Part shown: piece by piece, positions 9,527-60,500 of the stretch
Position numbering within the stretch: position 1 is the first letter of the stretch
Layout: each line of letters starts with the position of its first letter
NCBI RefSeq assembly: GCF_052425735.1
Contig: NC_135770.1
Coordinates: 11,222,001-11,286,000 of the forward strand
From: Oculina patagonica
Lineage: Eukaryota
DNA: 64,000 nucleotides
Reading direction: 5' to 3'
Made by a program: the position numbers and the translations under genes
The notes under the pieces: model-generated
Told to the model about the DNA's origin: nothing
The model's database searches: none
Seen by the model: the letters and a program-made list of their open reading frames with translations, nothing else

Positions 9527-11575
9527 TTTTCCCGCGCTTGATGCCGGTTCACATAGTTTCCCGCGCTTGGCACCGCTTGCATGTTTTCCTGTGCTTGGTA
9601 GCAGTTGCATGTTTTCCCGCGCTTGGCACCGCTTGCATGTTTTCCCGCGCTTGGCACCGGTTGCATGCTTTCCCGCGCCTTGTATCGGTTGCATACTGTC
9701 CCGCGCTTGGTACCGGTTTCATGTTTTCCCGCGCTTGGTACTGGTTGCATGTTTTCCCGCGCTTGTTGCCAGTTGCATGTTTTCCCGCTCTTGGTACCGG
9801 TTGCATGTTTTCCAGCGCTTGGTACCGGTTGCATGTTTTCCAGCACTTGGTACAGTTGCACGTTTTTGCGCGCTTAGTACCGGTTGCATGTTTTCCCGCT
9901 CTTGGAACCGGTTGCATGTTTTCCCGCGCTTGGTACCGGTTGCATGTTTTCCCGCGCTTGGTACCGGTTGCATGTTTTCCAGCGCTTGGTACCAGTTGTA
10001 TGTTTTCCTGCGCTTGGTACCGGTTGCATGTTTTCCCGCTCTTGGAACCGGTTGCATGTTTTCCCGCGCTTGGTACCGGTTGCATGTTTTCCAGCACTTG
10101 GTACAGTTGCACGTTTTTGCGCGCTTAGTACCGGTTGCATGTTTTCCCGCTCTTGGAACCGGTTGCATGTTTTCCCGCGCTTGGTACCGGTTGCATGTTT
10201 TCCCGCGCTTGGTACCGGTTGCATGTTTTCCAGCGCTTGGTACCAGTTGTATGTTTTCCTGCGCTTAGTACCGGTTGCATGTTTTCCCGCTCTTGGTACC
10301 GGTTGCATGTTTTCCAGCGCTTGGTACCGGTTGCATGTTTTCCAGCACTTGGTACAGTTGCACGTTTTTGCGCGCTTAGTACCGGTTGCATGTTTTCCCG
10401 CTCTTGGAACCGGTTGCATGTTTTCCCGCGCTTGGTACCGGTTGCATGTTTTCCCGCGCTTGGTACCGGTTGCATGTTTTCCAGCGCTTGGTACCAGTTG
10501 TATGTTTTCCTGCGCTTGGTACCGGTTGCATGTTTTCCCGCTCTTGGAACCGGTTGCATGTTTTCCCGCGCTTGGTACCGGTTGCATGTTTTCCCGCGCT
10601 TGGCACCGGTTGCATGTTTTCCCGCGCTTGGTACCGGTTGCATGTTTTCCAGCGCTTGGTACCGGTTGCATGTTTTCCAGCGCTTGGTACCGGTTGCATG
10701 TTTTCCAGCGCTTGGTACCGGTTGTATGTTTTCCCGCGCTTGGTACCAGTTGCATGTTTTCCCGCGCTTGGAACCGGTTGCATGTTTTCCCGCGCTTTGT
10801 ACTGGTTGCATGTTTTCCCGCGCTTGGAACCGGTTGCATGTTTTTGCGCGCTTAGTACCGGTTGCATGTTTTCCCGCTCTTGGAACCGGTTGCATGTTTT
10901 CCAGCGCTTGGTACCGGTTGCATGTTTTCCAGCACTTGGTACAGTTGCACGTTTTTGCGCGCTTAGTACCGGTTGCATGTTTTCCCGCTCTTGGAACCGG
11001 TTGCATGTTTTCCCGCTCTTGGAACCGGTTGCATGTTTTCCCGCTCTTGGAACCGGGTGCATGTTTTCCCGCGCTTGGCACCGGGTGCATGTTTTTTCTC
11101 GCACTTGGTACAGTTGCACGTTTTTGCGCGCTTAGTACCGGTTGCATGTTTTCCCGCTCTTGGAACCGGTTGCATGTTTTCCGCGCTTGGTACCGGTTGC
11201 ATGTTTTCCCGCGCTTGGTACCGGTTGCATGTTTTCCCGCGCTTGGCACCGGTTGCATGTTTTCCGCACTTGGTACAGTTGCACGTTGTTGCGCGCTTAG
11301 TACCGGTTGCATGCCGTTTCCAGCGCTTGGCACCAGTTGTATGTTTTCCCGCGTTTGGTACCGGTTGCATGTTTTCCCGCGCTTTGTACTGGTTGCATGT
11401 TTTCCCGCGCTTGGAACCGGTTGCATGTTTTCCCGCGCTTGGAACCAGTTGCATGTTTTCCCGCGCTTTGTACTGGTTGCATGTTTTCCCGCGCTTGGAA
11501 CCGGTTGCATGTTTTCCCGCGCTTGGTATCGGGTGCATGTTTACCCTCACTTGGTACCGATTGCATGTTTTCCCA
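9527..11575. repeat. 28-bp minisatellite (~73 units) with a 251-bp higher-order repeat
   Basis: Consensus TTTTCCCGCGCTTGGTACCGGTTGCATG. The variant block TACAGTTGCACGTTTTTGCGCGCTTAG recurs at 9851, 10102 and 10353. Confidence 0.97.
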
Positions 11576-32598: not shown

Positions 32599-34290
32599 AT
32601 GTCGATGTTTTCATTTCAAACTCAAACTCTTGGAATCTTTTCGTTGTATATTTGGTTTTTGATATGGATGAATTTTGCTGGCGTGGCTTTCATAACTGGC
32701 TGCAAGACATGCAACAGCAGAATAGAGCGAGAGAAAAGATTAATGGCCGTACAGGGACAGATCCTGGCCAAGCTTGGTATGACAAAGCCTCCAAACGAAG
32801 AAAAGATTTTTATGAATATCAGTCGTGATGTAATGCAGACTTACAGGAGCGCGGTGCAAGAAAAAGACAAGCTCTTACTCGAATCAAAGCTGTGCCGTTC
32901 ACAAGTCGACGCAGACGAAGAATACTTTGCTAAGAGAGTTGAACGATTCGTACTGGAAAAAGAGGTTGCTAGAACAGTCGTGTCAAGTAAGTATGCAAAG
33001 TATGCGTAAAGGCTAGGTCAGCGAGATTTGCTTAATTATGTTCTTAGAAATATTTTCGCGATTTTCAGAAGTTTTCAAGTCTTCAGGGCTTAAGCGAATG
33101 CTTCAAATGCATTACACTTACACTCGTTGACCGGCGTGGCTTAGACTGATTCGGAAGGAAGAATCGATCTGTATTACTAATAATGTTTTGGACGAGAAGT
33201 TCGAGCCCTGGCCGGGGTCACTGTGTTGTGTTCTCGGGCAAGACACTTCAATCTTGACATAGGGTCTCTCTTAAACCATCAAGGCTTGTTAAAAGACTTC
33301 TCTTATACATAACCCCGTTTCTACCTTCGATTGACGTGTAGCGACAATCTTTCGTTACTTGTTGCAATGCCACAGGAAATGAGGTTTTCAAGAATAAGAG
33401 TAGTTTTCTGAACATAAACAACATTTGCATAACACCAATAATAAACTCTCATAGGTTCCAAAGAAGAAAAGCTCAAGGATGTGTACTCCTTAAGATTCAA
33501 CATCACCAAACTTGCAATGGAAAGTGCACGGGTATCCTTAGCGGAGCTGCGGCTTTACCAGTCACCAAACCAACAACAGCCTCTGAGTGATGTGCGCATC
33601 GACGTTTGTGAAAACACCAGAGAAGATGACAATAACACCAAGAATGGCTGCTCCAATGCGCTTGATTCTAAGTGGAGTTTATCCAGCGAGGAGAAGTGGA
33701 TATCATTTGATGTCACTTCACTGGTTCAGAGGTGGCTGGATGATTCTACGTTGAACCACGGTCTCTCAGTGACCGTAACAAGTTCTGAATCTGCAAGCAA
33801 AGATGTGGATGTTTCCCCGATTTATCTCGGTGGACCAGTACCTAAAAAGGCCCACAACGAAGACGAAGAATCTTTGCCAAATATCCTAGTGTGGTTTGTG
33901 CCTCGCGAACGAGTGCACTCGTCGAGACGAAGAAACAGGCGGTCCCTGGATTCGAGTTATTGCAAGAAGCGACCCAAAGAAAAGCGTTGCTGTCTTCGCT
34001 CGCTGTACATCGACTTTGAGAAGGATTTGCGCTGGAAATGGCTTCACGCGCCGAAAGGTTTCTACGCAAACTATTGTGCTGGACAGTGTCCTTTAATGTG
34101 GGGAGTCGAGAAGCAGAACCACCACACTTCCATTATGGCTTTGTACAACAGAATCAACCCTAATGCCCCAGGGGACCCCTGCTGCGTACCAAAATCTTAC
34201 GAGCCCCTGGTTGTCCTGTACTTCAAAGATGGTGAACCTAAAATTGATGAGCTGTCCAACATGGCGGTCAGCGAGTGCACTTGTCTGTGA
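32599..34290 (+). CDS. TGFB-like: TGF-beta sensu stricto ligand precursor, ~407 aa, 2 exons (32599-32986, 33455-34290); start codon uncertain
   Basis: Signal peptide; LAP-like GCKTC...KRLMAVQGQILAKLGM...YFAK; furin site RRRNRR; 9-Cys mature domain SLDSSYC...CCLRSLYIDFEKDLRWKWLHAPKGFYANYCAGQCP...PCCVP...LSNMAVSECTC, closely matching TGFB1-3. Confidence 0.96.
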
Positions 34291-45519: not shown

Positions 45520-48500
45520 ATAGACAAGGAGGGCGAGTAGTCTAATTGTTTTAGTAGAAACTCTAAAGAATTGCAGTCCAAAACCTACAATTTTATGTAC
45601 TTTTAAGCCAAAAATCAAGAAAAAATCACCGTTTAAAGAGCAACGCGCGTGCGATTGTTTTCTATCGGCGAATAGAAATCAATGGGAGAACCAATCAGAT
45701 TCGCGGATTTCCAATAGAACACGACTGAGTTTCTACTAATAAATGTTAGAAATTGATTGGCCAGGCAATTAACTGTCAATGATCATGATGATTATTTTAC
45801 AGTTGACCAGTTGTATCCAATGGATATCAAAATTGTTGCTGCAATGGGTGATGCCTTTACAGTAAGTAATATACAAAATTGATCTTCTTTAAATCAGTTG
45901 ATATTGAAACAATGTTTAATTTTTTTCTTGGGCATTATTGTTGTAACATCCGTATTTTTAATTTATTTTACTACTTATTTTTAAGTTGGGACTTGGAGCA
46001 AGGGCCACATCGATAAATGGATATTTTAACGAATACAGAGACATCTCGTGGAGGTACATAGTAAATCATTTATTTAATTATATTGTTGTTTACTCATACC
46101 GTAATCAGCTACAGGGTTTTCAAATCAAGCGGGTAATCGCTGGAGTTCTACCGGCTTCTTGTTGATGTGTCACCGATTACCGTATTTACTCAAATAAGCG
46201 CCGCGGCGCTTATTAAATTTTTTGCGCCTCCAGTGTGGCGCTTATTCGAGGGCGGCGCTTATTTCAAATTTGGACGCAACAAAGAATTTTATCTCCTACA
46301 GTAATTTAAAATACCTTATTATAGAAAATTAACGATACATGTAATTTACGTGAATTTCAAAAATTAGCATTAATTTTATGTACCTTAATTTATGTCATTG
46401 TTAATTTAAATCACACTATTTTACAGCATTGTTATTTTAAGAGACATTTATTTTCTGCAAAGTTATGTTTACACGTGATCTACTTCTCCGTCAAAGCCGC
46501 AGGAATAATAGAGGCAGCACAGGCGGCCCAGGCGTGATATGTGATCAATGTGATAATAATTTGGCCGATTGCGTAAGTCTGGTTCAGCCGTTTAAGACAA
46601 TGTATGAGAAATCTTCAAAAATTGCTCTAAATATTACATTTGTAAATGAACTGAAATAAAAATGGCTTACCTCTTGCAGGGATCCATATTCGTTTTTTCT
46701 CCAAGTCGTCAGCCGGGCAAGTATGCAAGATGACATACTTGCCCTGGCAAAATTTTACTTGCCCGTTCAAAAGTGAAGAATGGCGTTGTTATTATCACAT
46801 GCATGTAACACTGTGTATACATAAAATCAAGATTCAAGACAACATAAATAAATTTTGATTCACACGTATTTGTTAATGAGACTTTTTACTTGTCTACCTT
46901 GGCTGCCGGTTTACAAATGTCACAAAACATCACGCCCCCAAGCGGCTTGTGATGTTGCGGAAGCGTATGATGCGGGCACAAATGAAAGCCAGGGCCTTTT
47001 CGACTGCAACCACGGAAGAAAAGAACGCTTTTTCTCTTCTTATTCATATTTGGTTTGTTTTTCTGAAGTGTTAACATTGCTTTTTTTCTTCTTTGCTGGC
47101 GGTGCCAGACCAAGATAATGGCAATTTTTTATCAAAACATCAGCTGATGCGATCGCCTCGTGTTTTCGCGGATGCAGCTGCAGTACAAAATATCAGCGGT
47201 TGAGAGCTTGAAAATTGAGCCTGCAATGATTTCATTGATGGAAAATACCTATGGTGGGTGATTACCGTCATAATTAAACTTTGGATTTTGTTACTTGTTA
47301 TTGCATTTTGTTTTACAATAAGTTGCTTGTGTGTTTGAATTTTATGTTGGTTGTATCAATTTTCTGTCAGAATTCAGAAATTTTCGCCTAATCAAATTTT
47401 CGGTAACTCTAAACTTTCTAGTCATTTGAATTTTTCAGGTTGTGCCAGTTTTCGGGAACTATTCCAATTTCAGACTGTTTTCGTTTTTCGTTTCTGGTGT
47501 ATTTTCTGCCAGTAGTTCGAATTTTCCGACACATTCAATTTTCTGCCAGTAGTTCGAATTTTCAGACACATTCAATTTTCTGCCAGTAGTTCGAATTTTC
47601 GGACACATTCAATTTTCTGCTACTACTAGTTCTCGAATTAGCCTGGGGACTAGTGGGAGGAGTGGAAGTCACCAGATCGAGGTAATTTATTTCCCGCCTT
47701 GTTGATCCAAGATGGCGGATAGAGAGCCTTCGTCAAATTTTTCCCAGGCCATAAATCTTCTGCGCCAGGCAACGGAAATTCTTTCATCAAGTGAAAATGA
47801 AAATAATTCGTCGTCATCAACACCGTCTGGACCTTCAAACGGTAGTGGAAGGGCTCAAAGTGCCACTCATCCCGCAGATCCCGGTCCTTCACAAGACCGT
47901 GACGCAGCCGTCATGGCAAATTTCAGAAACCTTTTTTCACCGTATCCGGCATCTACTAGTTCATCATTTTCCCGTTCTCAGAAACCCTCACGGCCATCAA
48001 AGCGGGGAAGTCGACCAAGTCCTTACTACAAACCCAAAGAGACATGGACACACGATTTTTTTTGTCTTGCTAGTCCTCAGCAGGATCAAGTTCCATCGAA
48101 GTCTCAGAAGCTCGAATTGCAAGCTGCTGGCTTAGGAAGAAAAAAGGTGGTTCTTGGTAACAAAGACGGGGCAGTAGAGGTTAGCAAGAAGTTGGAAACT
48201 GCATACCCTAGACTGAAAGCCGGAGGTGGATTTGAAATATTGAGGAGTGGAATTGGCAGCAGTCTTGCTTTTGTACCACCACCAGCAACAGGATACTCTG
48301 TTCCTTACCTGAGGGATCAGGCAGGTCTTGGACAGGCCCTGGCCTATCTACGGCCATTGCAAGCAGAACTAGATGTTTCTCCCATTTCAACTGATATGGT
48401 GAGTGCAAATAGCATTTATAAAAAAATTGTAGTGGTGGATCATGGCTAAAGTCTTTCAAAAGTATATTTTATTACAAATATTATCTTTTTAAGAACTATT

Positions 48501-51500
48501 CGCTTTTTTGTTTACCCCTCAAATTTCTCTTGGGACGATTGTACGTCATTGTAAATCCCAAGAAAAATTGAAAACAATGCTTATGCAAAGATTTTGGGGG
48601 GTAAACAAGATGTATTATGGGAATGGTGAAAACAGCGAATAGGAAAATGTTGGAATCAAAATAATGACATACTGTTTACATTATTATTGTTAGGCTTCTA
48701 CAGCACAAGCAAATTCAAGTGTCCCTCAAGTGAACTGTACAACATGCGGGTTGCAGCTTAATGTGACAGAAGTCAGGTCCCATCAGCAGATATGCAGCAG
48801 AGAGGATGTAGATGCTGAAATAGATGCCCCTCCAGCACAGCGAATAACTCACATTGAAATTTCAGATTCTCATGGGGTAATCTATTTACTTCTTAGGTAC
48901 TAGACATCAATTTCATGTATAGGGGGAGGGGATTTTATTTTTTCATTGACCCATCACTGTGCTAAAAAGTACTATAAAAATTCCCTTTTCCCTCCATCTC
49001 CCTTGCCCCTCTTCCCTTCAGTCAAAAGTCACCTGTATAAAGACTTACAGATTATGTTCAGTGTGTACTACAGATGAAGCTTTTACATGTCAATACTTTC
49101 AGATTATTTTGATGATTTTTTGGAAGTGAATATACCTCATGTTTTGTTGCCCCCCATTGAAGCATGTGACAATACTTAGGAGATCTGATTCTTTATGTTG
49201 TTGTAAACATTGTTAATACATTGTAATTGATAAGCTCATGTCAGATTATTGACAAAAGCAAACATTGTGTGCAGTCAATGGAGATTATTTGTAGAAATTT
49301 TTTAAGGAATATCTTTTATTACTCATCAGAGTTTATCACAGATGGAAACTGCTGAGAAGGAAAGCAAGTCAAATGGTAACATATTGTTATTAGCAAATAT
49401 ACAGTAACGATAAAGATGAGATGTTCTAGTATGGGACAAAGAAAAGTTCTGAGTGCCCGACAGGGATCAAACCCATGGCCTCCTAGATACCGGAGACTCA
49501 GAATTTTTCTTTGCCCCATGCTCGTGTCATGTAGAACATCTCATCTTTGTTATTTATTTGCGAACTTAAAATTTACCATCTTTATTATTTAATACACAGC
49601 CTCATAATTATTTCCCTCATAATAATAAATTACCACCCAATGACCCTTTATTTGGGGGGGGGGGGGTGAAATCTGGATGTTTTCTGAAACAGCAAGTATA
49701 CGTGTATTAACATTATTTTGTACCTTACAAATCAAGATATATCAAAGCTCAAGGAGATGTTTCCAAGTGAAACTGAAGCTGCCCTTGAAAATGTCCTGGA
49801 CTTCAGCTTAAATGTGGAAGATGCAATTGATACTCTTGTAAACAAACCATCTGGTCAGTACCCATATGGAATAATATAATTGTGTTCTTGTCTCATGTCA
49901 GTGGGATCTACATTTTGTAGTCGCATGTAGTATATATAGACATTCTAAAGTAAAATTCATTTGTACAAGATTTTTTTTGTCACTCTTATTTCTATGTTAT
50001 TTATTTCAACCTTGAATTTGGAAAACGTTCTTATTCAGTAGACAAGAAAAGATATTAGTTTACTCATACTCCTTTTTTAGTTTTGTTCTTGGTTCAAATT
50101 TCCTTTCCTTTTGCCCTATACTCATTATCGTACATTAATAAAAATAAAAACAAAAGAAATGAAAATTTAACCAAGGATGAAATTTAACCACAACATTAAT
50201 CTATTTAGCCTAAGCTGGAAAATTATCAGTTGTCATATGTATACTTAAGGCATGGAGGGGGGAGGGGAGGTATTAATGGTAGATAAGGGTGCTGTTCTTT
50301 TAGGTAGGAGTGCTATCCCTAGAGGTAGGGTTCAGGCTGTATTTCCTATCACAATGCATTATTCAATTTTATTGTTTCTGTCGCGGAATCTTTACAAATC
50401 CCGCAGTCGTGGTCAATAATCAATGAGGACTGTATATCTTCGCTACAGTTTTATTTGCGGTGTTTCATTCCAAGTTCTTTCACAATTCAACAATCTAGCG
50501 ATTCGTCAATCTAACAATCCGGAAGTTTTTTCCGTTAACAATTCTAACACGATCTGATCTTACAATATACTCTACTTCAATTTTAATATCCTGTCTTGCA
50601 AAACCAGTAATTTTCCCATGATCACGAGTAGTGTAAAATCCCAAGCCTAAGTATTGTAATAATACTAAATTTAATTCCTATTTCACAATAGCACGTTCTC
50701 TTCCCTAATTTAGATAGCTATACGCGTGCAATTACATCAGTTCTCTTACAGCAATACATAGTTAATAGAGGGAAATGGTTATGAAGCCCGGGAAAGTTTT
50801 TTGTTATAGGTTATTGTTCGCTATTTTGAGGGTTGACTGTGCACAAAACCTGACAAAATACAAAAGGTGGTTACGTGTGTTCATGCAACTAACCAATTAA
50901 AACATTTGGATTACGTAACTCATGCATAGTGTATGAGAGCAAAACAAAAGATGTGCACGGTCATGGACCTTCCAACCTAAATTTTGGCCCTTATTGTTTG
51001 CTCCTTTGATGTTTGCCGGGCTTCCAAACCATTTCCCTGTATTAACTATGAGTAATAAAACTACGGAGTTTGTTTGCATTGTTGTGAAATATTATGTCAC
51101 GAAATCTACGTGTTACAAGCTTTTTGTTTAATAGTAATCAGTATAATAGTTAATATTTTGTGGCATTGCGTTACGGTCTAAATTAATGATCAATAATATG
51201 TGTAATATTTTTCAACAGTTTCTACAGTTGACTGGGAACCTCCCCCAATGCTTCAGCCCCGAAATGTATCAGCAACAGAAGCAACAGGAGGTATGTATTA
51301 TTGCGGGCGACCAGAGGAGCCCGTAATCCTAATCTCAACGTTGTTTTTACGCATGCGCGACATGTATATAGCCAGAACCTTTCCCGATTTTTTCTTCTTT
51401 CACCAAGAACGAACGACAAGAATTTTTTAAAGATGGCCGCCGCGTTGGCCAGTGTACTGAATTTACAAAGCCAAAGTTTCGCTTCATTTGTGTGTTAATG

Positions 51501-54500
51501 TCCATTTAAAAGTTTAAAAATTGAAAGAAACAGTTTAAAAGAATACGCTATTCTCGCTATGATGTGAAAAGGGGAACTGCAATAATTGTAAGAAGTAGAA
51601 CAGCAACAACAAAAGTAATGGTGATAAAAGTGGTAGTGACAGTGACATTTACTATTGCTTGGACTTGTTTAAGGTATGCCTGCTGATGACATTCTCGAGA
51701 CATTTAAACGAAGTGTTGTTAAAGAAAATGGTCCAACTATGGCAATTACCTTCAACCGATCAAAGAAGGCGATTCGGGAACTTTGCAGAATTTACAAGAA
51801 CAGCTCCGGTAAGCTCTCAAGACCACCAGTGGTGTACTTTGTTTCCAGCAGTGGAGAGGATGAAGAATACGAGGAGGAAGCAGCAGATGTGGGTGGACCT
51901 TTGAAGGAGTTTCTTACAATTGCTACACAAACAGTGCTTTCATCCACAGATCCTCAACTATTTGAAGGGGATGATGACCACAAACTGCCACTTCACTCAC
52001 AACAGCTGGTCCTACATGGCTACTTTAGAATGGTAGGAGAAATAATGGCACATGCCATCATCCATGGACAGGTGTGGATTATTGGTTTAGCAAAGCCTGT
52101 GAAAGAGTTTCTGTCTACTGGTTGTGCTGAACGAGCCTCACAACTTGCTTGTATAGAAGATGTTGCAGACCTAAATGTACGTGAGGTGTTGAAGCGCATG
52201 GCTAAACCTACATGTAATGAAGAAGATATCACTTCCTTGAACTCAGAGGATATGGTTACTAACTTGATGGGTGAAAGTGGAGTTAGTGTAGCAATCTTGA
52301 CTGTTCATAATGCGGCACAAGTTGCTTATGAAATCATGGTGTATCAAGTGGTACATAAGAGAATGAGAGAATTGGAGGAAATGAGGAAAGGCCTTGATAC
52401 TTTACAGCTTAGTACCTTGTTAAACTGCCATCCCAAAGTAACCTCTTTGGTATTTCCCACGGTAGAAGAGGCTGCCATTGATGCTGAAGTGTTGCTAAAG
52501 AGGGTATCTATGGATCCCATCGCTACACCAAGTATCAGAATCAACACTGCATACATATTTCTTCTCGACTACCTTGGAAAGGTGTGCGAGAGAACAGAGC
52601 CACAGGGTATGTCACAGTAGTTAAAGAGAAGTGCATGGTGCTCTTTAATAAATAAGTAGCAATGATACATGTGCCAACAAGTGCTTCTGATTTTCAAAAC
52701 ATTTTTTTTGTTTATATACTGCCTAGAAACAGAATGGAATTTTGATCCAATATCATATTGTTGTTACTTGCAGAAATTGGGATTAAGCCAGTGTTGACAT
52801 TTATCACAGGCTCCCCACTGATGCCAACGGAAATAGTCGTCAAATTTTTGCCCGAGGACAGCAAAAGGTTTTCCCTTCCAGATCCTGGCACCTGTACCAG
52901 GGAGCTAAAGATTCCAACATGTTATACAAATTATGAAGAGTTTCAGTCAGCATTTGATGCGACTGTAAGGGTACAGGGGAAAGGGTATGGAAGAGCCTAG
53001 TCATCAGTATATGGGGTTGCGAATTAGTGCAGTGAAAGGGAGTTGAAGTAATTCCTTGTTAGTGGAGGCCACGTAAGTTATGTTGTTGTTAACAAGGCAG
53101 GATGTGCATTCCCATTACAACAACGTACTACCATTTGCAACAAGCTACCAAGAATATCTAACTTTTTCCGCATCTGTTCAGACACAAGACGTAAAAGTTT
53201 GTGTATGCAAGCTACATGTACTGCACTTGTCAAAAGTTTTCTTTGCCCATTTATATGGTAAATTTGTTTTGCCCAGTAATACGAGTAAATGATTTTAATC
53301 TAAGTGATTGAGAAAGCTAGACAAACTTGCATTTCATAGTTGAAAAACATGCAAATAATTTAGCTCTTTATGGAAGCTTGAAAGTCTGGCAGTGTTAGTA
53401 GAGATCATCAATCACTAACTTTCTATCCAAAATACTGGGTAATGGTTATTTGTAATATAAACGGCATAGCATACTCTTAAGGCGGCGAAATACGAGATAC
53501 AAAAACCCTCAACTTGTGTCGCAACATTGTTGCATTGCCAGTTGAACGAGTTGTTGACTGTATTTATACCGCGCGCTCAACTTGTCTCGCAACAAATACC
53601 AGTGCTGCAAATTACAGTAACATGTTGCACAAAGTAGAACAGAGTTCTACTTTGTGCAACAATATTTTTCAACTTGCAACACCGAAAATTGTCGCGAGTT
53701 AGGTTTAACGCAACAACTCCTTCAACTGGCAATGCAACAATATTGCGAGACAAGTTGAGGGTTTTTGTATCTCGTATTTCGCCGCCTTTACTCAGTGACT
53801 AACTTATTCTACTACAATGCAGCAAAAGTAGTTTATTGGCTATCCATCAAAAACGTTTGACTGCTCTTGAGCCAATCAGATTGTTAGGTATCCTAACTGC
53901 CTGTCGCTTATTTAGTCTAGTATCATTAGTTCATGTTGTTGTTAATCCCACTGTTGAAGAAATTGAGATGATGTTGTTTCAAATGGTTATTAATTGTACT
54001 TAAAACAAAGTCTCTACAAAGTTGAAATTACAAAAATTTGGGATAGTAACATGTGCATAACAGGCCACAGGTCAGTTAATCTCAGTCACTTTTTATCTCA
54101 GTTGTTGTTAATCCAGTGCTGTCATTGTTACAGTTGGCTCTTGCAGAAACATGTTATAACATGTGCATAACAACCCACAGGCTAGTTAATCTCAGTCACT
54201 ATTTTTCGTAGTTGTTGTTAATCCAGTTCTGTTATTGTTACAGTTGGCTCTTGCAGAAACATGTTATGACATGTGCATCAGGTACCTATGATAAAGGTTT
54301 CTAGGATTTTGATAATTGCTCTTTTATGCACTGGCAATTATCCATTTGTGTTTTTATGATTTGAATTTGCACTGTTAATAAATAAAAGCCATCTGTTTGT
54401 CATTAGTTTGGTGTCTTTATTGTTAGAAGTTCTGCCTGCACAAAAAATGAGAACAAGGCAGTTCACTTGTTTCACTACTGAATTTGTCCAAACAGGTCAC

Positions 54501-57500
54501 AAGAAATTACAGTCCTTTTGATGTGATTAGCTTGAAGGACAGTTAATAATCCATCGATGCAGCAGGCAATGTCATAACAAAATTTAATGCTACTTACTTT
54601 GACCACAACATTTTGAAAAAAACTGTAAATTCATGAAGGCTATTAAGAGAGTTGAACCCTAAATATTCAACTGCGCTATTTTATTCTTGACCTGAGAAAC
54701 AGTGCATGCAAAAATTCACAATATCCAGTTCAATCAGTAGCATGGGCAAGATTTGTACAATTGGTGAACTGATCAGCTACTGTGCCCTTTCAATAAAAGT
54801 TAAGGCTTGAATATATATGTCTACACCTTGAAATTCGGAATATTGGCAAGGATCTATTGTTCTAGCTAGTTCCTCGTATGTTTCCAATGGAAATGGAAGT
54901 GAAGTCTGTGGTATAACCACTGACCCATCTGCACTGTGACAATGGCCATCCCATGTCTCTGAGGGTGCTGGACCTTCCCAATCAATGCCATAATCTTCAA
55001 TATCTGCCTGTTTAAAAGAAAAATTTATTATATGCTGTTATCTATTGAAATTCTACTGATAATAAATCTTATATACTCTATAATAAGCAAAGATATTGGC
55101 AAAGGTTTAAAACCTTTTTTTTCAATAGCTGATTTTTTTTGTTTGAGAAGATAAATGTTACACTTTTCAACAAGATACCCAACACCTCAAATCTGTCCTA
55201 AAAAGCTCTGCTGCACATCATTCTTTCAACTCTCTGATGAAACACCGTGATGTATGAAATGACTTACCCTTTGGTGTAGTTCTTGTACCACTCTGTGATT
55301 TGATCTTTGTAACTGCATCAAACCATTGACCCACATTTGGACAGGTGTCATATTTCTTTCTGTGCTAATGGGACCATTGTTGTGACCTGAAGAAAATATT
55401 CTTAGGTGCCTGTTGATTCTTGGCAAGTACACAAAATGTAGTGCAAATATGTGAATTTCATTGGAAGGATCTAGAAGTGAGCACTCCTCCATATGGTAAA
55501 ATAACTGGTAAAACACATATGTGCACCCAGTATACAGATCACGCCACAGTCTCTCAATACGCTGGTTATGCACACTTCTGCCAGCAATGTGACTTCCTCG
55601 GTTTGGTCCTCTTAATGGATGTGACAGCATGAACCAGGCAACATCGCAGTTTTCTCTACCTTTATCAGATCTGACCCTCGAAGGAAGCCCATAGGTCTGC
55701 ACTGCATTGTGAAATAGTCTGTACACCGTAGAAGCACGGTTGTTTGTGCTACATTGCAAAAACACGATCATTCTTGTGAAACCATCGATTCCTCCATGGA
55801 TAACAAACCTCCACCTTTAGAAGTCATATAAAATATATTATGTTGATTTCGTTGATTTCTTATTATATACATTAAACTCTAAATCCTTAGACATTAGCAA
55901 ACTCCCAAGTAAGAATTACTAAAAAATGCATAAAGCAAGTTTCCATAAAGAATTCAATCAATAGCATCAATAAAATCCCCCATACTGTCAAGAAGTTCAA
56001 GTTGAGTAAGCATAGAGAATGGGAATAGAGGATAACTAAAAAGACAAGTAGACAAATGCAACAGTGAATAAATGGGCTGAGGGGGGGATAAGTGTTGGTT
56101 TTTATTATCCTTTTTTTGGTTTTTATTATCCTGATAGAAATGACATAAAATAATAAAATACTGGCAATTTAGAAGAAAAAAAAAATGGACAGATTCAATA
56201 ATTAAAGGAATGATACCTTATTAGCTTATGGTTACCATCTATATGCCACAACGCAAGTGGTCCATATACTTGGTATCGTCTTCTGTGTATTGTCCTAAGC
56301 TCAAGCGCCCGTAGTAGGACCCCAGCTGGATTGACCCTCCGCATTGCCTCTCTTATTCTACACTGTTGGATTCTCAAACCTCTGCTCATCAGAAATCCAG
56401 TCATTCGCCTGTACCCGGTGTTTGGGAACTCTGTTAGGATGTTCTGAATCAGCTGGTCGAGTTCTTCGTTGTCAATGAGTGAGTATGTTGATCTCACACT
56501 CAACCCAAACTCGGACAAACGTCTTTCAATAGTTCGGACACTGACGCCTAGCAAAGTTGCAATATCGACGACAGAGAAGCATCTTCCAATCAGAAAATCA
56601 AGTTGATCTTTGGGAATTGAATATCTAGGACGTCCACGTTGTCCCGTAAAGGCAGTGGCTGGTGATGAAACACCAAAATTATCTTGACTTCCAATAAGAC
56701 AGTCTCGTGCACATCTAATTAGGTTGACAATTTGTTCATCGATTCCATACAAATCCACAACACGAGCCATTAAACTTTGCAGCCAATCCAGCCTAAAGTG
56801 TAAGGCGTCCACTGTATTTGGGTCAAGACCTCCTTCAATTTGCCGAATAATATTAAGTAAAAGCTCTCGCAAATATCTGAACGATTGTAGCTCTTCCTCA
56901 GAAGGAATGACTCTATCCGCCATCTTGGATCAACAAGGCGGGAAATAAATTACCTCGATCTGGTGACTTCCACTCCTCCCACTAGTCCCCAGGCTAATTC
57001 GAGAACTAGTAGTAGCAGAAAATTGAATGTGTCCGAAAATTCGAACTACTGGCAGAAAATTGAACGTGTCCGAAAATTCGAACTACTGGCAGAAAATTGA
57101 ATGTGTCCGAAAATTCGAACTACTGGCAGAAAATTGAATGTGTCGGAAAATTCGAACTACTGGCAGAAAATACATCAGAAACGAAAAACGAAAACAGTCT
57201 GAAATTGGAATAGTTCCCGAAAACTGGCACAACCTGAAAAATTCAAATGACTAGAAAGTTTAGAGTTACCGAAAATTTGATTAGGCGAAAATTTCTGAAT
57301 TCTGACAGAAAATTGATACAACCAACATAAAATTCAAACACACAAGCAACTTATTGTAAAACAAAATGCAATAACAAGTAACAAAATCCAAAGTTTAATT
57401 ATGACGGTAATCACCCACCATAAATACCGCATCAGCCAAGATGGCGGCCAAAATTATGATTTTATCACGACAGAAAGTTGCAAATTATGTTCTGTTTTCG

Positions 57501-60500
57501 AAAAGTTATGAATGGATGACAAGTGGTCAGAACGCAAGTAACTCATAAGAAAACTTAATAATTGTTTTTTTTTTTCCATTAAGTCAAACTTAAGTCGTCC
57601 AGCGGACGAGTTTATTTAATCTTTTGGTCGTCCATACGATGTTTTAGTCGTCTCGGACGACCGGACGACTGCGAATATGGATCCCTGCTCTTGTATTTCT
57701 TGCATTATTTTGCCTTCTCTGTGTTCCTAGGGTGGGATTTAGGCCATTTAAGCGATTTTCTCTTTCGACGGTTTAGCCTTCACTAAAGAAAAACTAAAGG
57801 CTGGCGACCCCGTGGGCCAACGGCCCGCACTCGAAGCTCCATAAATCCCACAATAATGGTTGAATCTCGCCAAAATCGTCTCACAGTAGCCGTCGATAAT
57901 TCTTCTTTCCATTTGCTTATCCTGAGGTTCCAAGGTTTATCGCAGCCGCCCGAAAAACGCTCGTTTTCGAGCGCCAGAAGTCCATATCTGCTTCGTCGAA
58001 ATGCGAAAGCAGTTATCTTGGGTACGGGATTTGAAATTCTAGCTTAGCGACCGCGCCATCGCAACAAAGTGGCCCTCGACCGTGGAGAGGCACAGGGAAA
58101 TCGTCATCATGCAAATTGTACCATCCGAGACCAAGCCGGGAACAAATTCCTTCGAGGAGTGTAACACGACGGCTAGGAGCTCTAAGCCTTGCGATTTGTG
58201 ACATGTCACTGCATATGCCAATACATTTGCATGATGACGATTTCCCCGTGCCTCTCCACGGTCGAGGGTCACTTTGTCACGATGGCGTGGTCGCTAAGCT
58301 AGAATTTCAAATCCCGTACCCAAGATAGCTGCTTTCGCATTTCGACGAAGCAGATATGGACTTCTGGCGCTCGAAAACGAGCGTTTCTCGGGCGGCTGCG
58401 ATAAACCTTGGAACCTCAGGAGAAGCAAATGGAAAGAAGAATTATCGACGGCTACCGTGAGGCGATTTTGGCGAGATTCGACCATTATTGTGGGATTTAT
58501 GGAGCTTCGAGTGCGGGCCATTGGCCCACGGGGTCGCCAGCCTTTAGTTTTTCTTTAGTGAAGGCTAAACCGTCGAAAGAGAAAATCGCTTTTAAAAATG
58601 GCCTAAATCCTACCCTAGGAACACAGAGAAGGCAAAATAATGCAAGATATACAAGAGGTAAGCCATTTTTATTTCAGTTCATTTACAAATGTAATATTTA
58701 GAGCAATTTTCGAAGATTTCTCATACATTGTCTTAAACGGCTGAACCAGACTTACGCAATCGGCCAAATTATTATCACATTGATCACATATCACGCCTGG
58801 GTCGCCTGTGGAGGCAGTGGAAAGAGCCAGGACGGGATGTATTCCATCCCTGGAACCATTCACTGAATATTAGTCACTATTTCGTCCATTTACATATCTT
58901 TGTTGTATATGGTTTATCAGAATGAAACCTCAAGTTCTGTTTTTCAGGACGTTGTTGTTTTGTCTTTTGAATAGCGCAGGTTGCAATAAAAATTACTACG
59001 CATCCAATTCGCGTTAATTAACTGCATGTAAGCACACACCACACGAGAATTCGCGTTAATTAAATGCATGTTAACATAAATTTTCGACAATTCGCGTTAA
59101 TTTTATTACGCGTACAATTTGTTCGCGTTGTTAAAATGCTTCATTATATTCCTATAATAAGGTAGCGTCTTTTAATTGCCAATATCCGTCTTTTGCTGAG
59201 ACAGAAGTGACACTACCTGTCCTGGCAAAGTTCGCGGCCTTCACAACATTTACAGAACTATGTATTGTAAGAATGTTGAATAGAAAAACCAATAGGCGAG
59301 CGGTAAAACAATCACTTTGAACTTCAAAACATCGCTCTTGATGAAGCGAAATGTTTAAGGTTGTTTTACAGTTGCTTTGTAGTGCCATTATTAGTAAAAC
59401 GTAATTCCTCGAATAAGCGCCGCATCAGGTCTGCGGCGCTTAATCGGGGGCGGCGCTTATTAACTTTTTTGTCCCAAATGCAGCGCTTATTCGAGGGCGG
59501 CGGTTATTCTGGGGCGGTGCTTATTCGAGTAAATACGGTACTCTGTGACTGGTCATAGCAATCAGCATCCCCTAGCTCAGCAGCCCCTAACTTGTCGCAG
59601 TCGCCTACTCTTTTAGTTGCTGAGACCTACTTCAAAACATTTTGAAACCCCTGCAGTTGTAACTAGTAGAAAGTGTTACATGTTAATATCAACCAGTTCT
59701 GCACAGGTTATATAAATAATGTAGCAACTTAATAATGTTTGGTTGTGTTATAGTATTGGAGGAGCAAATTATTTGAACCAAACAACAACTATACCAAGTA
59801 AGTGTTACATTCATCAATTTAATATGTTTTTATTTTGTTACAGTCAACGCGCTTCACGCATGAACGCACAACTTCAAACATTCATAAAATATTTCATTCA
59901 CCGATTTCATTTTCAGTTAATGAAATCATTCTTCGAAACTTCAATCGAACAATTGTAAGTCAAATTGAAAGTATTTAAAAGCCCATGGTAAAATTGAAAA
60001 TAAGACATCTGACGTTATGGCAATTGATAATTTTTTTTAAAATAATTTTTCGGCTGTGTGCTGTTTTTTTTTCGCGCGGGAACAAATTACATGTAAAAAT
60101 GAATGACTGTGTCACCGCCGCATTCACGTAGTTATGCGCTCGTACATGTGAAGTTGGCTTTACCATACCAGGGTCGATGTGAAGGGATTTCTTCAAGCGA
60201 ATGAAGTTTAGCCTGCGCCAGCTGAATGTCATCCTCTAACGATTCGACTTCACGCTGAACTTGTTTGGATGTTTTAACGCATCCTGACTGTCTTTCGATG
60301 CCGATGGCGGGATCAGTGAGACGGACTTCCTGTTAGAACTTTGAGTGGAAATTTCCCGAGAATTGTTCTTTTCCAAGCTATTGTGCACTTGAATCGACAA
60401 ACTAAATGCTGTGCCGGTCTCTTCTTCTACAACACACTTTTGAAGATGCAGTTTCTCCTCTTGGATGGCGCTTACTGGGATTCCCATTCGAACAAACTTA

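Follow-up and report, generated by a model that had tools for sequence, protein, structure and literature searches.

A 64,000-nucleotide stretch of the Oculina patagonica genome (NCBI RefSeq assembly GCF_052425735.1, contig NC_135770.1, positions 11,222,001 to 11,286,000; hereafter the window, with positions counted from its first letter) contains, at 47250-57422, an intact DNA transposon of the IS3EU/GingerRoot type that carries two genes, a transposase and a CUE-HECT ubiquitin ligase, and has the ends TATGG...CCATA (Table 1). The arms of its terminal inverted repeats (TIRs), located by an inverted-repeat search, differ when aligned by 3 mismatches and by one extra 37-bp tandem unit on the right arm. 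Their identity is contiguous through the ATG and ends exactly after ATGGCGGATAGAG, followed by AGCCT on the left and TCATT on the right. Both genes thus have all their upstream sequence and their first four codons in common: the ligase opens with MADRE (ATG at 47712, plus strand) and the transposase with MADRV (ATG at 56923, minus strand), in agreement with the initial annotation, which had described TIR identity through ATGGCGGATAGAG and these two starts.

Table 1 Features of the two-gene transposon and its ends, in window coordinates.
Feature	Position	Strand	Description
Target-site duplication, left copy	47244..47249	.	AATACC, 6 bp; empty-site contigs
Left TIR	47250..47724	+	475 nt; terminus TATGGTGGG; holds ligase upstream sequence, ATG and first 13 coding nt
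37-bp subterminal tandem repeat array, left	47501..47620	+	3.2 copies
E2F-like motif, ligase side	47690..47697	+	TTTCCCGC, 22 nt upstream of ATG; post hoc identification
TISU-like start element, ligase	47708..47719	+	CAAGATGGCGGA, 11/12 vs SAASATGGCGGC, contains ATG
Ligase gene	47712..53000	+	754 aa, CUE + HECT; seven exons 47712-48398, 48694-48876, 49330-49375, 49737-49853, 51219-51290, 51674-52606, 52774-53000
Transposase gene	54777..56923	-	494 aa; three exons 56923-56217, 55814-55268, 55007-54777; HTH region and rva_4 DDE core
TISU-like start element, transposase	56916..56927	-	CAAGATGGCGGA, 11/12 vs SAASATGGCGGC, contains ATG
E2F-like motif, transposase side	56938..56945	-	TTTCCCGC, 22 nt upstream of ATG; post hoc identification
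37-bp subterminal tandem repeat array, right	57015..57171	-	4.2 copies
Right TIR	56911..57422	-	512 nt; holds transposase upstream sequence, ATG and first 13 coding nt
Target-site duplication, right copy	57423..57428	.	AATACC, 6 bp
HTH, helix-turn-helix; TISU, translation initiator of short 5′ untranslated regions.

The 462 nt upstream of each ATG are TIR throughout, and any promoter that the element itself carries must therefore lie in the TIR. Each ATG is preceded by a TGA in the same frame, 9 nt upstream, and its context has A at −3 and G at +4. On the left, no other ATG occurs in the 368 nt upstream of the ligase ATG; on the right, a further in-frame ATG results from one of the mismatches, lies 252 nt before the transposase ATG and opens an upstream open reading frame (ORF) of 30 codons. 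That both genes start at the shared ATG is supported by the in-frame stops upstream, by the in-frame splicing of ligase exon 1, and by the MA or MAD starts of most database relatives of both proteins. The arrangement is confirmed not to be a product of chance, because it recurs, with other shared codons, in four related elements (L002, L004, L006 and L009).

These relatives come from a word-based protein search, which returned 614 matches with transposase exon 1 and 203 with exon 1 of the partner (the ligase gene), and from the contigs fetched for those matches. Starts with MA were found in 80 of 120 transposase matches and in 66 of 120 partner matches, mostly as MAD, MAA or MAE, i.e. the starts that ATGGCGG or ATGGCCG would encode. 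An ATG at the inner TIR boundary of related families had been proposed as a check on the initial annotation, and the four additional two-gene elements share the layout. In L002 (58% identity in transposase exon 1), a TIR of ~489 bp with 39-bp subterminal repeats shows contiguous identity through the ATG, the shared start being ATGGC(G/A)TCCGGTCAAG; transposase and partner begin with MASGQA and MASGQG, respectively, and the target-site duplication is CAGGAA. In L004 (50% in the same exon; duplication GGTTTC), the strict TIR of 258 bp ends 45-48 nt before the ATGs and the leaders differ, with AAA(G/C)ATGGCGGATG shared at the starts (MADA and MADD). In L006 (45%; duplication TATATG), strict identity ends 29-30 nt before the ATG on the transposase side, and farther away on the partner side, with CCAAA..ATGGCGGA(A/C)AG shared (MAES and MADS). 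L009, found via its partner protein (46% identical), has a TIR of 349 bp with weaker homology continuing through the ATG, a shared ATGGCCGCT (MAAD and MAAR), and the duplication CTTCTC/CTACTC, with one mismatch. The termini of all four elements are TATG (TATGGCG or TATGAGG), and arrays similar to those of the window element, of AATTTTCGG or CATTCGGC, are present in the relatives. Two other loci, L003 and L005, show no detectable TIRs in the fetched stretch and bear on the ATG context only; at L010, the element is interrupted by a long interspersed nuclear element (LINE), and the transposase start lies off the locus.

In L004, L006 and L009, where the strict TIR stops 29-50 nt before the ATG and the leaders differ, it is mainly the start motif, ATGGCGG/ATGGCCGCT, that is common to both ends. 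Thus, identical regulation is not a rule of the family, and the start motif is what is kept. Across the window element and its four relatives, the first codons vary between families yet match within each element, a pattern of concerted evolution of the two ends. The initial annotation had suggested that homogenization of the TIRs would keep the regulation of the two genes identical; the co-variation of the first codons implies that some homogenizing process operates, whereas, given the differing leaders of three of the elements, regulation need not be identical. The position of the inner TIR boundary itself differs from family to family, lying 9 to 17 nt past the A of the ATG. One related element has given rise to a palindromic derivative (L001:9730-11986), in which each arm comprises the TIR and the entire transposase exon 1; the 1104-nt arms are 94% complementary and separated by 49 nt, and this structure shows that inverted copying of one end onto the other happens. 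A shared N-terminal domain (e.g. a common helix) was considered as the cause of the shared start and rejected: when profiles of the N-terminal 55 residues are compared with each other (79 sequences of the transposase and 64 of the partner, including the window copies), only residues 1-4 align, at 5% probability, and the N-termini are unrelated beyond residue 4.

On both sides, the start codon is the ATG of CAAGATGGCGGA, which fits the TISU consensus SAASATGGCGGC at 11 of 12 positions. In mammals, YY1 binds this element, which is positioned shortly after the transcription start and directs the translation of mRNAs with very short leaders (PMC3177215, PMC2518114); a single element governs transcription, via YY1, and cap-proximal translation (PMC2518114, PMC3177215); TISU leaders have a median length of 12 nt, with the transcription start within ~30 nt upstream. 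TISU is known from mammalian housekeeping genes, whereas the likeness in the coral element is a match of sequence, the short leader, YY1 binding and scanning-free initiation being mammalian features. The start contexts of the relatives are AAAGATGGCGGA, TAAGATGGCGGA, CAAAATGGCGGA and CAATATGGCGGA, with a weaker one, TAACATGGCGTC, in L002. Within the window, AASATGGCGG occurs 4 times vs. 0.11 expected; the occurrence at 34258, which lies inside a TGF-beta coding region, was discarded as a gene-start motif and is considered incidental. A perfect (12/12) TISU consensus, CAAGATGGCGGC, is found at 57437-57448, just outside the right end of the element, in the surrounding repeat; it opens an ORF of only 35 aa and may be the relic start of an outer element.

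Upstream of both starts lies an E2F-like motif. The corresponding pattern, TTTSSCGC, occurs within 70 nt of the ATG in 5 of 7 loci (the window element, L002, L003, L004 and the partner side of L006) against a background of 0.35 per kb (P ~5e-6, post hoc). In L008 (78% amino acid identity), most of the TIR has diverged from that of the window element, and only ATCGAGGTAATTYATTTCCCGCC..CAAGATGGCGGAT, with the E2F-like motif included, is well conserved; this segment is a phylogenetic footprint over the start and E2F-like motifs. Separately, a ~2-kb satellite at 9528-11513, with a unit of ~28 bp, carries TTTSSCGC in most of its units and inflated the background count of the motif test. A more distant relative of the partner gene (L011:1-150, L012:1-135) has AAAAATGGCGGAC at its start and, upstream, the palindromic TGACGTCA, which resembles a cAMP response element (CRE-like), together with CACGTG; lineages thus vary in their upstream motifs but retain the start motif.

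Contigs of the empty site (sequencing runs X1 and X3) follow the left flank to 47249 and continue with GCATCAGCCAAGATGG, the right flank just past AATACC, and thereby fix the element ends and the 6-bp duplication, with the qualification that the flank is repetitive and that these contigs may stem from paralogous copies of the surrounding repeat. Within the outer TIR, 10 ATTTTC motifs are present, all in the same orientation and part of them in the left tandem array; together with the tandem arrays, they are most likely transposase binding sites. An inverted repeat of 276 nt (96% complementary, 108 nt apart) at 57841-58500 adjoins the element as a foldback in the surrounding repeat.

IS3EU elements are characterized by a 6-bp target-site duplication and TA..TA termini, with fungal members ending in TAYGG..CCRTA, and some fungal members carry a passenger gene, such as an alpha-kinase, opposite in orientation to the transposase (PMC10045372, PMC12730594); GingerRoot belongs to the same lineage, and coral homologues have been noted (PMC6839031). 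The window element has AATACC on both sides, consistent with the empty-site contigs, and the termini TATGGTGGG...CCCACCATA, which fit TAYGG..CCRTA. Its transposase contains an IS3/IS481-like DDE core preceded by an HTH region, and no HHCC zinc finger was seen on inspection by eye of the 494-aa transposase model, as is typical of IS3EU/GingerRoot. In every hallmark examined (duplication, termini and DDE core), the element matches IS3EU/GingerRoot, and the coral homologues noted in PMC6839031 lend indirect support to a probable place in this clade; however, GingerRoot TIRs are 100-150 bp long, compared with 475-512 bp here. The IS3EU/GingerRoot papers cited above (PMC10045372, PMC12730594, PMC6839031) describe no HECT partner and do not place the gene starts within the TIR, and the words ‘promoter’, ‘start codon’ and ‘ubiquitin’ are absent from the GingerRoot paper. 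Apparently, this is a young, autonomous, two-gene element.

All six GT..AG joints of the ligase gene were found in RNA contigs (runs X1 and X3, from two organisms). The introns fall mostly in bins of zero depth, and the two runs therefore contain spliced RNA. The joined exons form an intact ORF of 754 aa from the shared ATG to 53000, with exon 1 in frame with the CUE and HECT exons. Comparison with Pfam identifies CUE (8e-5) and HECT, the latter over two exons that match adjoining parts of the profile (7e-5 and 3e-4). A profile built from five homologues matches the HECT domains of SMURF2, ITCH, WWP and HUWE1 at E ~5e-12; this five-sequence profile was needed, given that a single-sequence search of exon 6 against PDB sequences gave no match. 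Run X1 also contains an alternative donor of intron 2 (after 48896 vs. 48876; 48877-48896); its use causes a frameshift, and the ORF then stops after 336 aa. Intron 4 holds an element of ~294 bp with 39-nt inverted ends (50757-51050), with very high contig depth in the RNA runs, and one X1 contig skips 50750-51050, indicating that other copies of the transposon lack this insertion. No AATAAA or ATTAAA was found within 1 kb past the ligase stop. The 1.8-kb spacer between the 3′ ends of the convergent genes contains a 110-bp tandem repeat (2.1 copies, 54047-54278).

The splice sites of the transposase gene were derived from GT..AG and the continuity of the Pfam profile, not from RNA. The rva_4 profile begins at the end of exon 1 and matches exon 2 at 1.3e-62, whereas the HTH matches in exon 1 are weak; the DDE residues, read from the 494-aa model, are D (WHIDG), D (RSDKG) and E (RIERLW). 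An AATAAA is present at 54685, on the transposase side.

Those contigs of runs X1 and X3 that cover the inner TIR and the initial 185 nt of ligase exon 1 are 10-20 times as deep as those of the other exons and carry 3-4 fixed differences, a pattern suggestive of a variant present in abundance or of a family of truncated derivatives in which this 5′ part is kept. The X3 contig begins at 47695, i.e. 30 nt (k−1, assuming 31-letter words) before the branch point between TIR and unique sequence, and this position suggests that both TIR junctions are present in the X3 run. Contig ends as transcription starts were ruled out because such ends reflect branch points of the assembly graph. No RNA 5′ end was seen in the Logan contigs L008, L011 and L012, which are unspliced. 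Raw reads were recovered as well, 19 from a polyA run and 2 from a small-RNA run, numbers too small for placing a transcription start.

On the observed anatomy, start codons, splicing of the ligase, conservation of the layout and co-variation among the relatives, we base a reading in which promoter activity, the position of the transcription start, factor binding and end-copying are predicted: more likely than not, an inner-TIR promoter with a TISU-like start, used twice in mirror image, co-controls the transposase and the ligase, and the ends are renewed by inverted copying. Under this scheme, the outer TIR zone would consist of the cleavage end (TATGG) and short same-orientation repeat arrays (ATTTTCNG) that are probably bound by the transposase, and the inner ~100 nt would provide a TATA-less promoter and a short leader, preceded by an E2F-like site and ending in the start codon within the TISU/YY1-like CAAGATGGCGGA. 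Given the inverted duplication of the TIR, the same promoter, leader and start would face inward from both ends, one copy driving the transposase and the other, convergently, the CUE-HECT ligase, such that the two products would be under common control; binding of the transposase to the neighboring arrays could provide feedback on both genes. The original proposal that one duplicated promoter and 5′ untranslated region couples the two genes is, to this extent, plausible: the shared ATG and the all-TIR upstream sequence conform to it, and the promoter is a predicted component. Occasional copying of one end, in inverted form, onto the other would keep the ends alike through the first codons. Only copies with the junction in the first few, dispensable codons would leave both genes working, which would explain the variable inner TIR boundary.

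Several observations weigh against this interpretation. TISU and the dependence on YY1 are known only from mammals, and position 12 of the motif in the coral element is A instead of C. The E2F-like motif, a post hoc observation, is lacking at some ends (L005, L007 and the transposase side of L006). The RNA evidence covers the left 6 kb and consists of assembled contigs and a few raw reads, and contigs cannot show RNA ends. One of them, the X1 contig 47593-47897, crosses the inner TIR edge and reaches 119 nt upstream of the ligase ATG, which would not fit a very short leader of the TISU type if this contig represents mRNA; it is, however, a variant of high depth, differs at 4 positions and may derive from a different copy. 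Furthermore, some contigs from the RNA runs extend past the outer end of the TIR into other flanks, and the coverage of the TIR may therefore reflect read-through transcripts or DNA.

The strongest competing explanation, which we nevertheless consider unlikely, is that the shared starts are a structural by-product, whereby end-copying through repair or template switching overruns into coding sequence and leaves shared codons and a shared ATG context without special regulatory meaning, each gene merely requiring a promoter of some kind. The variation of the inner TIR boundary is as expected under such overruns, one of which extends for 1.1 kb in L001, and the first codons look dispensable inasmuch as the two proteins share only four N-terminal residues. 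Mere overrun, however, would not readily account for the ATGGCGG/ATGGCCGCT island that is still shared in L004, L006 and L009 despite the diverged leaders, for the dominance of MA[D/E/A] starts among hundreds of relatives of both genes, or for the conserved proximal footprint in L008. Taken together, these three observations indicate selection on the motif itself.

Alternatively, the AAnATGGCGG island could serve at the DNA level as a transposition signal, for instance as a site for a host DNA-bending factor similar to YY1 or for the transposase at the inner border of the TIR, its overlap with the start codons being incidental. At both ends, the island is located on or close to this border, with the symmetry of a transposition signal, but its ATG is the start codon in 10 of the 10 gene starts examined, and in L004, L006 and L009 it lies 29-50 nt inside the strict TIR, so that a gene signal fits better; we regard this explanation as improbable. 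Least probable of all is transcription of both genes from outside, by read-through from a host gene or the surrounding transposon with the TIR as a mere transcribed leader: although the element is embedded in other repeats or an intron and contigs of the RNA runs cross its outer edge, the genes face opposite ways and cannot both be served by one outside promoter, an element that spreads to new sites needs a promoter of its own, and a read-through mRNA would have to carry the burden of two upstream ATGs in the tip of the TIR (+2 and +95).

For the paired inner-TIR promoter and start that we favor, the functionally closest system is MuDR (Mutator) of maize, in which the mudrA transposase and the mudrB helper are convergent; there, gene promoters and transcription starts lie, together with the transposase binding site, in TIRs of ~215 bp that are nearly identical (PMC3440606). 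In the coral element, as in MuDR, two genes converge and both have the same TIR sequence upstream. The TIR of MuDR holds the promoter and the transcription start, whereas in the coral element the start codon and the first codons lie in the TIR; the partner is mudrB and the host a plant in one case, and the partner is a ubiquitin ligase in the other. MuDR is a member of another superfamily, with a transposase of the MULE type and a 9-bp target duplication. In the literature searched, we found no reports of the start codon and first codons of both genes inside the MuDR repeat, and nothing relevant that links HECT to TIR transposons or TISU to transposons. Relative to that literature, the new points are the superfamily, the partner gene, the placement of the start and first codons within the repeat, the way in which these codons co-vary from family to family, and the presence of TISU-like and E2F-like motifs.

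A more far-reaching proposal, which we put forward tentatively and hold to be doubtful at present, is that cnidarian two-gene IS3EU transposons possess a ‘coding TIR’, the inner end of which is a dual initiator of transcription and translation of the TISU/YY1 type, used in mirror image for matched, cap-proximal expression of transposase and ligase and kept symmetric via repeated inverted end-copying. If true, it would extend the reports of TISU-type elements for the first time beyond mammals and to a mobile element. On the reading that we favor, a cut-and-paste transposon could coordinate two genes with one control DNA, the repeat that is recognized by the enzyme supplying promoter, leader, start and first codons, and end recognition, gene expression and end-to-end concerted evolution would be linked in one sequence. 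The predicted promoter/initiator would be a compact natural module of ~100 nt that is testable in cnidarians. The same arrangement offers a concrete reason for the MAD, MAA and MAE starts in both protein families, and would explain why annotations list these elements as pairs of ordinary host genes with a common 5′ end. The two genes appear to be set up for co-expression, and joint action of the transposase and the HECT ligase is thereby suggested as well.

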